Notes: generated by a model not told the origin, from the letters alone. DNA of 63,165 nt, filler included, from Octopus bimaculoides (GCF_001194135.2; 7 parts of 5 records of this genome joined end to end with filler, not necessarily neighbours in it), one strand, 5' to 3'; positions 3,220-23,420 are shown, numbered from the whole stretch's first letter. A program made the numbers and translations.

Positions 3220-3316
3220 TCGCAGTCCTGCCTTTCCACATGTTTTCTCAATTGGGTGTCGCAAATTTGTAATGCTGCTAGCATGCAATCTTTCCAACTG
3301 GCAGAGATCACTTCAT
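3220..3316 (-). CDS. Paralog A exon 2 of a small Cys-rich surface/secreted protein: (N)EVISASWKDCMLAALQICDTQLRKHVERQDC(E)
   Basis: Acceptor ttttatttttgcattacag| and donor GA|gtgtgt; 97 nt, phase 1 to 2, open. Homologous exons at 13885-13982 and 23315-23420 share W, three Cys and the splice phases. Confidence 0.85.
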
Positions 3317-6256
3317 CTGTAATGCAAAAATAAAATCCCTTTTGTTATGTCTATTAAACTAAACATTTCCATAATCGTAGAAACATTTCATACATACCTT
3401 TAACCATTATATACATCAAGAAAGACGAAATATTATATTGTGGAAACTGACGGGGTTGCATCATAGAATTGCCTATATATCAAGCGAGAAGCTGCTGAAG
3501 TAGATGATAGGGAATATCTGACTCGGATTATTTTGGAAGACATTTTTGATTTCTCGTAAACAGAAATTACATATTTCATGATCTTTCAAATATCCTGTAG
3601 AAGATCGACAACGGCTCGATCCAGGCGCTCGTTTTTACTATTATAGTAACTAAACAGTCCACTATATCAATGACGTACTCTTAATGGCATCCAGCCCAAT
3701 GCCACTGTTATAGTTATTCAGAATTTCGCTTCAAATGTCAACCGGCATTTTCTTTATCGTTGTTTGTCTTTCATACGAAACAATTGCAAAGTCAGAATTT
3801 ATAGATATAAATTTCGCATGTCATATGTCATATAAACATTTCAAATCTTGGTAATTTTGGATGTAAATATTTGCTTAATACGATTTGTGTTATTGAGGCA
3901 ATATTATGCCGTAATTGGTGCTGTTTTGAAAAGTAATCTCAGAGTGGCACTTCGGTGATTCAAAATATTCATTATGCATAATTTAGAATTAACTGATATT
4001 TGATCGAATTAACGGATAACCTGAAATTATTATACAATGACCATTAGTCCATGGGTTACCTACGTACGTGTGCGCATGTGTATGGGGGGGGTCTTTGTGT
4101 GTATGTGTGTTTGTACGTGAGGGATATTAGCCTGTGTGTGTGAGTAGGTGTGCGTTTAAGAAACAAGCAAAATAAATAATTTTGTTGCTGCATTTACTTT
4201 CTTCTACGATTATAAAACAGAATGTCCTTCCTTTTAGCAAAACTCAGTTTGATCCATACTCACTTCTGCATTTAATTTGCTATCTTCTCTTAAAGATACA
4301 TTATAACAGCTTGCGGCATAACATTAATGGCCGTGAAGTCACAGTATACTTTGGCATTATAGTTTAATCTTATTTTTCGTAAGAGTATATATATATATTG
4401 GTTATCTTCAGTGTTCGAAACAGCGTTATAGATTCTGTTGAAAAGATCTGTGGGTTTGTCAATAAAATAATCGTCTAATATTACATTTGGACTTCAAATA
4501 TTTATTTAATTATTGTATCACTCTGTCATTTCTCGGAAATAAATTTACATTCTACTGTCGATGTTTCTGCCGAGATTCTCAATTTCAACAGATTCTCTTT
4601 CAAGTGAATATCACTCAAACAGTCTGCATGTACTTTGAAAGAATGCTTGTTGTGATTATAATTCCTAAGATCACGGTTCTCTGTGTTTAGATTTCCCACA
4701 TTAATTAGATGATTATTTTCAATCCTTTGCCACCAGACTTACTTTTGGATGCTTCAAAGAACATGCTAATTAAGTCACTAACTCATCTGTCACCGTACGT
4801 AATAGAGAGCTCATAAACTACTTAGTAATATTCCGCTTAGAATAAAAGGATATCTTAATCATTTTGTGTTATATTCATTTCAAAATGTAGCCATGAAAAT
4901 AGACCTGGATTTACCTAATTCAGGAGGTATATGAGCTGTGACGCAATGATGCGTGATATTACCATACCTAAATGATATCTAAAGCGATTATATTTTCAGC
5001 ATGTCAAACCAGAATAATGGATACGAAAAAGGCTTATGAGATACTTTTCTTGGTACGTGGCAACAAAGATATCTTATAAAAGTGGAAAAATTGAGGAGTA
5101 AAATACGATAGAGTAAAATACGGTAAATGCAAAAAATTGAACGAGAAAGAAACGAAAGCAAGAATACGGACATCCCCGTTCTTCTTGGTTGAAGAAGTAT
5201 CAATTAAAATGAGAGAAAATATGTTAAGATCCGTTATGGCGCAAATCAGTGGTGAGCGATTGGCGTCTCTAGTTCTGCAAAAGAAAAACTTTCATAAGTC
5301 AGTACTTGCTAAAAATTTAAGATCTGCAATTAAGCAGCCTGTTCGAATTCTTGGATAAAAGAAAAAAATATGGGATTATTCTATTCAGCAGGCTTTGCGT
5401 TTCTTAGGTCCTTTAATATATGTCTTAGATTTTTACACGATTCCCCACTTCGTTGCATATGGTGCAAAGTTGGTTTTCTAACTGAATACGTGACTATCCA
5501 GCATAGCTGTAACTCTTTTGTGGATGCGCAGGACGATACATAGGTGATTTGAGTAACTTCTTTTAGAATCGCCTTTACATTACCCTATGTACTTGGTCCA
5601 TTCAATTAGACGATCGTGAGAGTTTGCTGTTATTTTTGATTGGTGTATCATGAAGTTTATAATACACACCTTGAGTGATGGGGAAGCTTCACGGTCTCGA
5701 AATCTATTATAACGGGAATACAATACAATATAACAGAAATGAATGCATTGTTTCCACTCAGTAAAATGCAAGAAAAATATTTTATTTACGATTCCAGCAT
5801 ATGAAGAAAGGGTGAGATGTAAAATTATATATCTGTAATGTGTGTGGGTCCGTGTGTGCGTGTGTGTGTATTGTTATATTTCCTGAAATAGTGCAATATC
5901 TGAGGCAGCAAACGGTTTCATATCAGGAATATTGCAACACAAATGTATAATATATATATATATATATATATATATATATATATATATATATATATNNNNN
6001 NNNNNNNNNNNNNNNNNNNNNNNNNAGAGAGAGAGAGAGAGAGAGAGAGAGAGAGAGAGAGAGAGAGAGACAGCGAGACAGACATATAGAAAGAGAGGAT
6101 GATAAATAATATTTAGAAATTATGAATAAATATAAATGTATTATGGGAAATCGACATTGTAAAGGCTAGAACGATAGACGTCTTGATTGTTATAATCATC
6201 GCCATTTTAGATACTAATACACATGGGAATGGAATACTTAACATATATATACTTAC

Positions 6257-6296
6257 TTAAAAGACATAGAAAAATAAATAAAGTATATTTCATCAT
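6257..6296 (-). CDS. Paralog A exon 1, signal peptide MMKYTLFIFLCLL
   Basis: ATG..TTA A|gtaagt (phase 1). Splicing to 3220-3316 gives MMKYTLFIFLCLLNEVISA-SWKDC, a typical signal peptide. Homologous to 16644-16680. Confidence 0.85.
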
Positions 6297-6374
6297 GCCG
6301 TTGCCTAAGGTAGGCTTCCTCAGGTTTGATCAAACTGAAGTCGTCTACAAATAGCGGTTTCTTAAAGAAATACG

Positions 6375-6896
6375 TATGATGTAACACATGTTTTGGTCTT
6401 AATATAGGTATATGCCAATTGCTCTTCATGTTCGTTCATAGAGATAAATTTGACATTGAATATTTCATATGTGACTTTAGAAGAATTTATGTACATACTC
6501 ATTTTTTCTTTTGCTATCGTGGTTGCTATCGTGAATTGATGAGTCAGCGCCATTGAATTTAAGACATACAATGTGCGACGTGTCACTACGCAGGCTTACC
6601 ATTTGAGCATGTGTTTATGGAAAGGGGGCGACAGCCAGACGTTTCTGGTTGATTGTATCTCCGTATGACTAATGCTTTTGTTAGGTCTGGGTAGTCCGAT
6701 CCCCCGAAAAGTGGAGTGTCTTAAATTCAATGGCGCTGACTCATCAATTCACGATAGCAAAAGAAAAAATGAGTATGTACATAAATTCTTCTAAAGTCAC
6801 ATATGAAATATTCAATGTCAAATTTATCTCTATGAACGAACATGAAGAGCAATTGGCATATACCTATATTAAGACCAAAACATGTGTTACATCATA
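6375..6896. repeat. Near-perfect inverted duplication (arms 6375-6566 and 6717-6896, 150-bp spacer) upstream of paralog A
   Basis: The ORF track gives the same peptide on opposite strands (6362-6586 minus, 6730-6996 plus). By my reading the arms differ only by a 12-bp tandem duplication in the left arm. Confidence 0.95.
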
Positions 6897-21668: not shown

Positions 21669-21753
21669 GTGGCAGGGGTGAGACACTCTAAATAATTCGT
21701 AACATTCCTTGTCAGCTACACCCGCAGCACAGTGCAGGAAATGTTTGTAACTT
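21669..21753 (-). CDS. Paralog C exon 3 (G)SYKHFLHCAAGVADKECYELFRVSHPCH
   Basis: cttccgtttttccag| ... |gtaagt; 85 nt, phase 2 to 0, open; continues in frame from 23315. Confidence 0.85.
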
Positions 21754-22689
21754 CTGGAAAAACGGAAGACAATTTGGGAAGAACATTTACAAAACGAACA
21801 TTCAATCTCTATATAGAAAATAAAAGATTATAGTCAATTCAATTCCAGATATATTAAACTATTGTTTGTAAAGCGATAAAATATCATAATAAAGAAAAAA
21901 GATATTTGAAAGAAAATATATATATTAACGTATCATCTGTTGTACTGTACCCTTAAGAAATTTATCACTTAAAAAGATTTCGATTAAGAGATATTTTATC
22001 AGCGTAGGTTAACATCATCATATGTGATATACCTGTTGTGTCGACGCGCCCAGGCGAAGAAGTAGAGGCCCCCAAGTCATATAAATAGAGGTAGTCTGGC
22101 TGTGGCAGGGGTGTTGAATAGCTGTTGAGTAGCAGTCGAGTAGCGGTTGACTAGAGATCGTCCGAAGGTGCTACATAGCAGTATCTTGAGACATAACAAT
22201 ACCACGACATGAAAATTTACATACATGATCTCTATAGTAAATGGATGAACTATTTTGCATTTGAATACGAAAGCAAAATTTGGAATTTGGATACGATTGT
22301 GTGACATGATGGATAACAGCCAGGTACATGCTAACACGTATTCGGAAAGTCCCAATGGAAATTGAAGTATTACAATGGATGGAAGGAATGACTTCAAAAA
22401 TAGGAAATCAAAGGGGTGGGATACTCTTGGAGGACAAAATTTGAATGGCTATGACGTCAGCTGTTGTGTGCATCTTCCTCGAAACGATTTCACCATCATT
22501 TCGATTTACGTCTTCCTTATTTCGTTGCGAATATATATATATATATGTATATATATATATATATATATGCAAGACACGATGTGCAAATTGTTCTCATATT
22601 ATATTTTCTATTTCCACGCATACGCTGTGTTTGTCTTTGATTTTATTGACTACACAATATAGTAGGTTCAGTTAGGCATCTTCTGTGAG

Positions 22690-23285
22690 AAAAACGACGC
22701 CATGTCGCAATTCACTCTGCCAGAAATTTGGGAAAGACATGCTGTTACTGCTTGGCATTCGCATCGGAAGCTCCAGTAGGAACATTTCAGAGTGTTTGGG
22801 TATCAATCTGAGGAAAGTGCAATTTGAGCACACGTACGATAAAAATCAAACATCCAGCCATCATCATGGAGTTTTGTGCGATCACTGGTGATGGCGAAGC
22901 TGTACCTGCATTGATTTTCCATCACAGCCTCAGACTCAACACGGAGTCATACATCAAATGCGTGGATAAGGTTCTGCAAGAGAGCAGCTGCTGGAAAATC
23001 TTATGTCTGGCAACAGGATTTTGCACGATGCAACAGAAGCAAGGGAACCCAGTCATGGCTGTCAAATAATTTCTGCGACCACCAACCTTCCCAGACTGTA
23101 AACCCCGTGATTATTGTTTGAAGCATGCAGTTGAACGAGAGACCAACAAACTTCTAACACCAAGGATGAACCGAAGGCATGGATTATGGCAACATTCATC
23201 AACTTAAACAAGGACGACAACCAGAAAAGTTGTAAGAGTTTCCGAGGTCGTCTGAAGGCTATGGCTTAAGTTAATAGCAAGTGAT
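22690..23285 (+). mobile_element. Decayed Tc1/mariner-superfamily (maT-like) transposase fragment in paralog C intron 2
   Basis: KHPAIIMEFCAITGDGE..LRLNTESYIKC, WQQD(F)A, PDCKPRDY, AVERETNK, IMATFINLNK. Confidence 0.75.
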
Positions 23286-23314
23286 ATTTAGCTTAGATCT
23301 TATAGGATAAATAC

Positions 23315-23420
23315 CCGCAGTCCTTTTCCTTTTTCAGATAAGGTGTAAGTTCCGAAGAGCAATTTTGTTTTGCTTTAGTCCTGCAAGTTTTCCAAATGGT
23401 CATGTTTTTGGTTTCTCCAC
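23315..23420 (-). CDS. Paralog C exon 2 xGETKNMTIWKTCRTKAKQNCSSELTPYLKKEKDC(G)
   Basis: ttttatttcaattgttag| ... GG|gtattt; 106 nt, phase 1 to 2, open. Flanking intron sequence is homologous to A and B. Confidence 0.85.

Follow-up and report, generated by a model that had tools for sequence, protein, structure and literature searches.

A tandem cluster of six-cysteine genes in octopus and its candidate glycosylphosphatidylinositol-anchored surface proteins

What do the repeated units between positions 3,220 and 23,420 of this stretch of Octopus bimaculoides DNA encode? The window, by which we mean the whole stretch analysed (63,165 nucleotides, filler included), has as its source here chromosome CM046618.1 at ~50.03-50.05 Mb (assembly GCA_001194135.2), where record position equals 50,027,797 plus the window coordinate w. 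A preliminary description had read three units, here called A, B and C, as tandem minus-strand genes with homologous introns and splice phases 1, 2, 0, 0, each specifying a signal peptide, a six-cysteine domain, then a polar stalk, and at the end a hydrophobic stretch. This core architectural reading holds. The units belong to an octopus tandem cluster whose intact members are, in our judgement, probably glycosylphosphatidylinositol (GPI)-anchored, disulfide-locked helical surface proteins. Coordinates without a prefix are those of the window; L001-L003 are O. bimaculoides loci of annotated family genes, and L004 is an O. vulgaris locus of 109 kb. The DNA of L001 matches that of the window at 100% identity and also extends past it.

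Are the units genes at all? Exon edges were set by reading each exon with its flanking sequence, and every internal boundary combines a polypyrimidine tract and AG acceptor with a GT donor, which usually reads GTAAGT. The twelve peptide fragments of the preliminary description were all recovered on the minus strand, at the places given for them or directly beside. Unit C is the clearest case. Its exon 1 lies outside the window (L001:10001-10040), while four minus-strand exons lie inside it: exon 2 (23315-23420; phase 1 in, 2 out) encodes the end of the putative signal peptide and the first half of the domain with Cys1-Cys3, GETKNMTIWKTCRTKAKQNCSSELTPYLKKEKDCG; exon 3 (21669-21753; hidden Markov model (HMM) E = 1e-13) encodes the second half of the domain with Cys4-Cys6, SYKHFLHCAAGVADKECYELFRVSHPCH; exon 4 (20549-20566) is an 18-nt micro-exon, SSRQEK, forming the polar stalk and candidate GPI attachment region; and exon 5 (19675-19749) supplies the C-terminal hydrophobic tail, VTVHSSVVLSALAVTLLILNKVQV, and the stop codon. 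Joined in this order, as the preliminary description had joined those inside the window, the five exons give exactly XP_052830545.1, the 107-aa "uncharacterized protein" of LOC128249944, and a search with the unit C peptide returned that single protein at 100% identity over all 93 residues. Unit C is therefore an intact gene already present in RefSeq, and it is the sole demonstrably intact unit within the window. The genes had been described as missed by the ORF track, which is only partly true, given the RefSeq entry for C.

The remaining units repeat the pattern in less complete form. Self-comparison shows A and B to be homologous through their introns at an offset of ~10.4-10.7 kb (72-77% identity over blocks of 600-870 bp), and B and C at an offset of ~9.2-9.6 kb (69-81% identity). 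Together with the exon reading, in which the splice phases are 1, 2, 0, 0, this bears out the proposed tandem arrangement. Exon HMMs match the units at E = 1e-10 to 1e-15. The tandem-unit pattern is real and far beyond chance, because the joined exons of C equal a RefSeq protein exactly and because of these exon-HMM E-values.

All five exons of unit B are present on the minus strand. Exon 1 (16644-16680) encodes the putative signal peptide MKSSLFIFLILL ahead of a GTAAGT donor, exon 2 lies at 13885-13982, exon 3 at 12896-12980, exon 4 (11323-11343) is a 21-nt micro-exon, TVGSRHE, and exon 5 (10105-10161) encodes the hydrophobic tail VAMYTPVILSALVITSLI and a stop. Exon 2 has a one-nucleotide insertion in an A7 run (13931-13937), where one extra A shifts the frame between Cys1 and Cys2, and exon 3 has an in-frame TAA (12959-12961) at the residue preceding Cys4, where paralogues carry Lys or His. 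The assembly proposed earlier for B thus has its exons right and yields a protein only if both lesions are ignored. Since the two lesions are independent and each is disabling, unit B is best called a pseudogene. Unit A is a 5' fragment with two intact minus-strand exons, exon 1 (6257-6296), which encodes the putative signal peptide MMKYTLFIFLCLL and ends at a GTAAGT donor, and exon 2 (3220-3316), NEVISASWKDCMLAALQICDTQLRKHVERQDC; its exons 3-5 are expected below 2888, outside the piece. A homologue search with the N-terminus of A found no database protein carrying it, so no annotated protein begins as A does.

Three assembly gaps, all beside microsatellites, interrupt introns of these units: 5996-6025 in intron 1 of A, between (TA)n and (AG)n; 10388-10542 in intron 4 of B, between (ATT)n and (AG)n; and 13542-13638 in intron 2 of B, with (TA)n at one side only. 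No reading frame spans any of the three. The gene models are independent of the gaps, because the sequence of these introns is complete in C, where the RefSeq model places no extra coding exon; the uncertainty is limited to the intron lengths of A and B.

How far does the array extend? The three units described at the outset are real, and the family to which they belong is larger. An exon-HMM scan of the window and L001-L003 detected at least 13 exon 2 plus exon 3 pairs and about five exon-2-only fragments, and the O. bimaculoides cluster spans ~150 kb, roughly 50.03-50.18 Mb, with units in both orientations. Only four loci in it are annotated, LOC128249941, LOC128249942, LOC128249944 and LOC128249945, all as "uncharacterized"; the first, second and fourth, like CAI9735849.1 of O. 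vulgaris, resemble unit C in their six-cysteine framework and five-exon structure, and in having a signal peptide and a hydrophobic tail. One of them, LOC128249942 (L003:10001-68024), covers 58 kb for a 121-aa product and has opposite-strand family units inside its introns; this gene model is probably over-extended.

Other units in the cluster carry no protein call. Unit D, the fourth and of the same sub-family, lies upstream of C and beyond the window, at L001:811-915 and 1973-2056. Its Cys2 is replaced by Gly (…KSKKVGPHE…), it lacks a gene call, and the exon scan found neither a signal exon nor a tail exon for it. Further units lie at L002:16863-19860 (unit c), at L003:74708-77835 (unit g) and, on the minus strand of L003, at 375-2332, 6623-7742 and 34447-35732. 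Several unannotated units have a signal exon; in L002 unit c and in the minus-strand unit of L003 at 34447-35086 a tail exon was found as well. L002 unit c has a signal, MKLSAFIFVLFI, both domain exons and a tail, VTFQQVFLTALGVILLIKY, its stalk micro-exon falling outside the scan. The group formed by L002 unit c, L003 unit g and the L003 minus-strand units lacks the Trp before Cys1, and L002 units a-c and L003 units a-b have seven residues instead of eight between Cys4 and Cys5; these two differences suggest a second sub-family. The framework first proposed, with Trp before Cys1 and eight residues between Cys4 and Cys5, describes A-C and does not extend to the whole family.

Is the family confined to octopus? 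A phmmer search with the unit C protein (P0001) against 1.84 billion representative proteins returned four real relatives, all from octopus: LOC128249941, LOC128249942 and LOC128249945, from the same chromosome as the window, and CAI9735849.1 of O. vulgaris. The long repetitive proteins P0002, P0004 and P0005 gave many weak repeat matches, lack the cysteine framework and were judged spurious. A profile of 13 family sequences run against a 5.8-billion protein set found O. bimaculoides proteins only. As had been suggested from the first, the family thus appears to be lineage-specific, so far seen only in Octopus (O. bimaculoides and O. vulgaris). The O. vulgaris locus carries three family units, and CAI9735849.1 (L004:10001-99175) is a 302-aa model that strings three domain copies over 89 kb; it is probably an over-extended model that fuses three units. 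Two of the O. vulgaris units (L004:12442-18590 and 85728-93848) are nearly identical and lie ~73 kb apart, suggesting that a segment was duplicated recently and independently of the array in O. bimaculoides. When L004 was compared with units A-C at the DNA level, the shared sequence was transposon only, offering no orthologue for comparison.

What has been held constant in these proteins, and what has been free to change? A complete unit has five exons and encodes a precursor of 100-125 aa: exon 1 gives a putative cleavable signal peptide, exons 2 and 3 a ~57-aa six-cysteine domain, micro-exon 4 the polar stalk, and exon 5 the hydrophobic C-terminus. B and C both have this layout with phases 1, 2, 0, 0. 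The family framework is C-x7-C-x12/13-C-x8-C-x7/8-C-x9-C, of which A carries the first three cysteines and B and C all six. In an alignment of 13 domains, five cysteine columns are invariant and the sixth is kept by all but unit D; exactly six Cys codons, with no extras, occur in 11 of the 12 complete domains, D having five. Five of the six positions show synonymous TGT/TGC variation. A few aromatic residues are likewise conserved, as G/S-Y-x2-F before Cys4, C-F after Cys4 and Y/H-x2-F after Cys5. The rest varies widely: identity to the unit C protein is only 25-37% across the family, domain net charge ranges from -3 to +7, and the domain exons (56-67% identity) are no better conserved than the flanking introns (53-84%). 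The pairwise ratio of nonsynonymous to synonymous substitution rates (dN/dS) over the domain is 0.4-1.4, in comparisons that are small and partly saturated and fit positive selection or relaxed constraint alike. Taken together, these measurements show a fixed disulfide scaffold whose surface is changing fast.

Such divergence could also be the mark of an array that is mostly non-functional, made of decaying young orphan genes annotated on weak evidence. The two lesions of B, the missing Cys2 of D, the lack of a gene call for most units, a dN/dS near 1 in some pairs and exons that fare no better than introns would all fit such decay. It is nonetheless very unlikely to account for the array as a whole: 11 of 12 complete domains have kept six cysteines at ~30% identity, with synonymous TGT/TGC changes; conservation extends to the aromatic positions; paralogues with a dS of 0.3-1.4 still share splice sites and phases; and a second species also has copies. 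RefSeq moreover gives alternative isoforms at three loci, and in its pipeline alternative isoforms require transcript evidence.

How would the fixed scaffold fold, and where would it reside? An AlphaFold2 model built from nine family sequences places helices at residues 22-42, 49-61 and 64-73, with a predicted local distance difference test (pLDDT) score of 83-90, followed by a disordered stalk and a helical hydrophobic C-terminus; a single-sequence model with pLDDT 64 was not used. The prediction for the domain is thus a compact bundle of three helices, in which three disulfides presumably hold the fold. By inspection, the N-termini look like classic signal peptides, with M-K/R followed by a hydrophobic core of 10-15 residues with small residues at -3 and -1, for example ISA|S and TSA|N. 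At the opposite end, the uncharged run is 12-15 aa long and ends 0-5 residues before the stop codon, or 21 residues before it in the read-through isoform P0012. A run of this length would be too short for a membrane span and is typical of GPI signals. Several paralogue stalks carry N-glycosylation sequons and small residues; those of P0012 and P0006 have N-N-S or N-T-S ~10 residues upstream of the hydrophobic run, which makes these tripeptides good candidate attachment sites. Because the terminal hydrophobic run spans 12-15 residues, we consider GPI anchoring a reasonable inference.

Several observations weigh against this interpretation. In units C and B the best candidate attachment sites, S-S-R and G-S-R, have a large residue at +2, which is unusual, and Lys follows the hydrophobic run (KKN, KY, NKVQV), as expected of a stop-transfer sequence. 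The fold model rests on only nine sequences. Two of the three LOC128249942 isoforms, X1 and X3, are without a signal peptide. Unit D is probably another pseudogene, and part of the array may be decaying, with four units annotated as coding, B a pseudogene and D possibly one. Among the database records there is no transcript-derived contig that encodes family proteins, and the function is entirely inferred.

The first two of these points lead to the main rival to GPI anchoring, a very short type I membrane anchor. Here the proteins would be single-pass, with the hydrophobic run remaining in the bilayer, a cytosolic stub of 2-5 residues and no exchange for GPI. The basic residues directly after the run would then obey the positive-inside rule, and the poor +2 positions of C and B also favour this topology, as does the P0012 isoform, which continues ~20 residues past the run. 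Yet the uncharged runs number 12-15 residues against ~20 in a typical membrane-spanning helix, and several end 0-2 residues from the stop, as in ITSLI* of B and LLIKY* of P0006. We regard a type I topology as unlikely, although it is the foremost of the alternatives.

Need the proteins remain attached to the cell? They could be secreted soluble peptides (toxins, antimicrobials or pheromones) whose tail is a propeptide or sorting signal that is removed, or that are shed after cleavage of the GPI anchor. The mature domain of ~57 aa is disulfide-rich and often cationic, with an isoelectric point of 8-9.3 in 8 of 12 members, and fast diversification on a fixed cysteine scaffold is typical of toxins and host-defence peptides. 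However, all annotated members and several unannotated ones have kept the tail exon, the charge is not uniformly cationic (some members reach -3), and neither PDB sequences nor folds revealed any likeness to toxin or antimicrobial-peptide families. Secretion in soluble form therefore strikes us as improbable. Among soluble proteins, the Euplotes pheromones and Aplysia attractin are compact helical three-disulfide domains with fast-evolving surfaces that act in cell-cell or mate recognition; they differ from the octopus family in being soluble proteins of 38-58 aa with another cysteine spacing, and neither was matched in the PDB sequence or fold searches.

Does the GPI-anchored candidate belong to a known family? 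The preliminary description had recognised none, and the database searches agree. Pfam has no match on record for any family member, not even a faint one. The family profile found nothing among PDB sequences at E <= 10 except an insignificant NDUFS5-like chain (E = 2). Foldseek, proposed in advance as a check to follow structure prediction, found nothing below E = 1 for the three-helix nine-sequence model in either PDB or BFVD (viral predicted structures), the query being the full-length model, whose signal and tail helices may mask matches. Keyword searches of the literature found no description of such a family, and no paper mentions the LOC identifiers. LOC128249941, LOC128249942, LOC128249944, LOC128249945 and CAI9735849.1 are thus alike in having no name, no Pfam domain and no paper.

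Several families were nevertheless compared directly. The Ly6/uPAR proteins, such as CD59 and Lynx1, are disulfide-rich surface proteins of ~70-90 aa when mature and usually GPI-anchored. Their genes are short, have several exons and stand in tandem clusters that evolve rapidly, and some of the proteins modulate receptors in cis. The octopus family resembles them in its small, disulfide-rich and probably surface-displayed type and its tandem clusters. The LU domain, though, has 8-10 cysteines in an all-beta three-finger fold, while the octopus domain has six, is predicted to be all-helical and has no Pfam or PDB match; membership was rejected. The helical GDNF-receptor/GAS1 domain (PF02351) has ten cysteines in ~80 aa against six in 51 aa here, and was dismissed on this count and for want of a Pfam or PDB profile match, the PDB containing GFRalpha structures. 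The twin-CX9C CHCH proteins have two CX9C pairs in a helix-turn-helix, lack a signal peptide and are imported into the mitochondrial intermembrane space. They were set aside: of the octopus spacings Cys5-x9-Cys6 alone agrees with the motif, the octopus proteins have a putative signal peptide, and the NDUFS5-like match has E = 2. Predicted secondary structure also told against Ly6/uPAR, GFRalpha/GAS1 and CHCH. Saposins, non-specific lipid-transfer proteins and insect odorant-binding proteins were excluded only on cysteine spacing and the absence of a database match.

A superficial parallel in architecture is provided by the vertebrate receptor activity-modifying proteins (RAMPs), in which a signal peptide precedes an ectodomain of three helices and up to three disulfides that is tethered to the membrane close by. 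Could the octopus proteins be divergent homologues of them? Beyond this layout, the CFxP motif of the family resembles the C[FY]WPN of RAMPs, and RAMP2 (6uun_E) stands at Foldseek rank 4, but with E = 8.5. An hhalign comparison of the family profile with an alignment of RAMP1-3 (the RAMP1 sequence verified against PDB) gave a probability of 0.1% with 13 irrelevant columns aligned, and no match to Pfam PF04901 is on record. The cysteine register differs as well: the cysteine of CFxP is Cys4 in the octopus family and Cys5 in RAMP1, and Cys1 to Cys6 span 51 aa against 78 aa, the octopus domain being about a third shorter. The octopus tail of 12-15 aa is too short for the RAMP helix, which is a 21-aa membrane span followed by a conserved cytosolic tail. 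RAMP membership was rejected on the hhalign result, the cysteine register and the tail length, and we hold common descent to be extremely unlikely.

What might GPI-anchored proteins of this kind do for the animal? The precursor would enter the endoplasmic reticulum, where the six-cysteine domain would be oxidised and the C-terminal peptide exchanged for a GPI anchor at a small residue of the stalk. A small helical knob would then be shown on the outer leaflet of the plasma membrane, its exposed surface diversifying among paralogues on a fixed scaffold of six cysteines and a few aromatics. Because the scaffold is fixed while the exposed surface diversifies, we speculate that the proteins have a binding or recognition role, either as ligands on the cell surface or by modulating other membrane proteins in cis. 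The recognition, immune, venom or pheromone roles suggested at the outset are candidates only. A bolder proposal would make this cluster the founding one of an octopod-specific and structurally new family, whose many tandem paralogues, GPI-anchored proteins of three helices and three disulfides, have a positively selected exposed face. They would act on other lineage-expanded membrane proteins as cis-modulators or ligands, or serve as recognition tags, and in function would be the cephalopod counterpart of accessory proteins of the Ly6/Lynx or RAMP type, with an unrelated fold; this we find unlikely.

Why does such a family merit attention? Cephalopod genomes are rich in lineage-restricted genes, few of which have been grouped into families or given a predicted topology, and the present analysis supplies the gene structure, domain definition and cluster map of one octopus-restricted family. 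It is a new protein family, probably of a familiar general kind, that of small cysteine-rich surface proteins in fast-evolving tandem arrays. If its members are indeed GPI-anchored with a fast-evolving face, they are candidates for octopus-specific cell recognition, sensory or immune roles and possibly represent a new small disulfide-helical fold. Otherwise the result would still correct the annotation: one unit is a pseudogene, several paralogues lack a gene call, and two models are probably fused or over-extended.

The DNA between and within the units contains several repeats. Between exon 1 of B and the last exon of C, a degenerate non-LTR retrotransposon fragment occupies 17233-19101 on the plus strand, with open reading frames (ORFs) at 17448-18865. 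Its GC content is 0.44-0.49 against a background of ~0.33, the ORF containing VRQACPLSLLLY weakly matches the reverse-transcriptase region of LINE-1 ORF2p (E ~0.5-0.7), and the fragment is 65-66% identical to O. vulgaris L004:42724-44695. An interspersed repeat at 7816-8511, between A and B, has a minus-strand ORF (8143-8517) and matches O. vulgaris L004:51797-52498 over 703 bp (91% identity) and L003:58363-58584 over 222 bp (99.5% identity). The 124-aa product of this ORF has no relative in PDB; the repeat is probably the 3' part of a retroelement.

Inverted repeats are also present. Starting ~80 bp upstream of exon 1 of A, positions 6375-6896 form a 544-bp inverted self-match of 82.7% identity, part of which recurs in inverted form upstream of exon 1 of B (6754-6901 versus 16747-16891, 85%). 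It may be an element that forms hairpins, or the promoter region may have been duplicated in inverted orientation. Within intron 4 of B, at 11059-11233, a 185-bp inverted repeat in perfect register (86% identity) has further copies in L003 and, at 85-94% identity, at two places in the O. vulgaris locus, and looks like a short hairpin mobile element of the miniature inverted-repeat transposable element (MITE) type.

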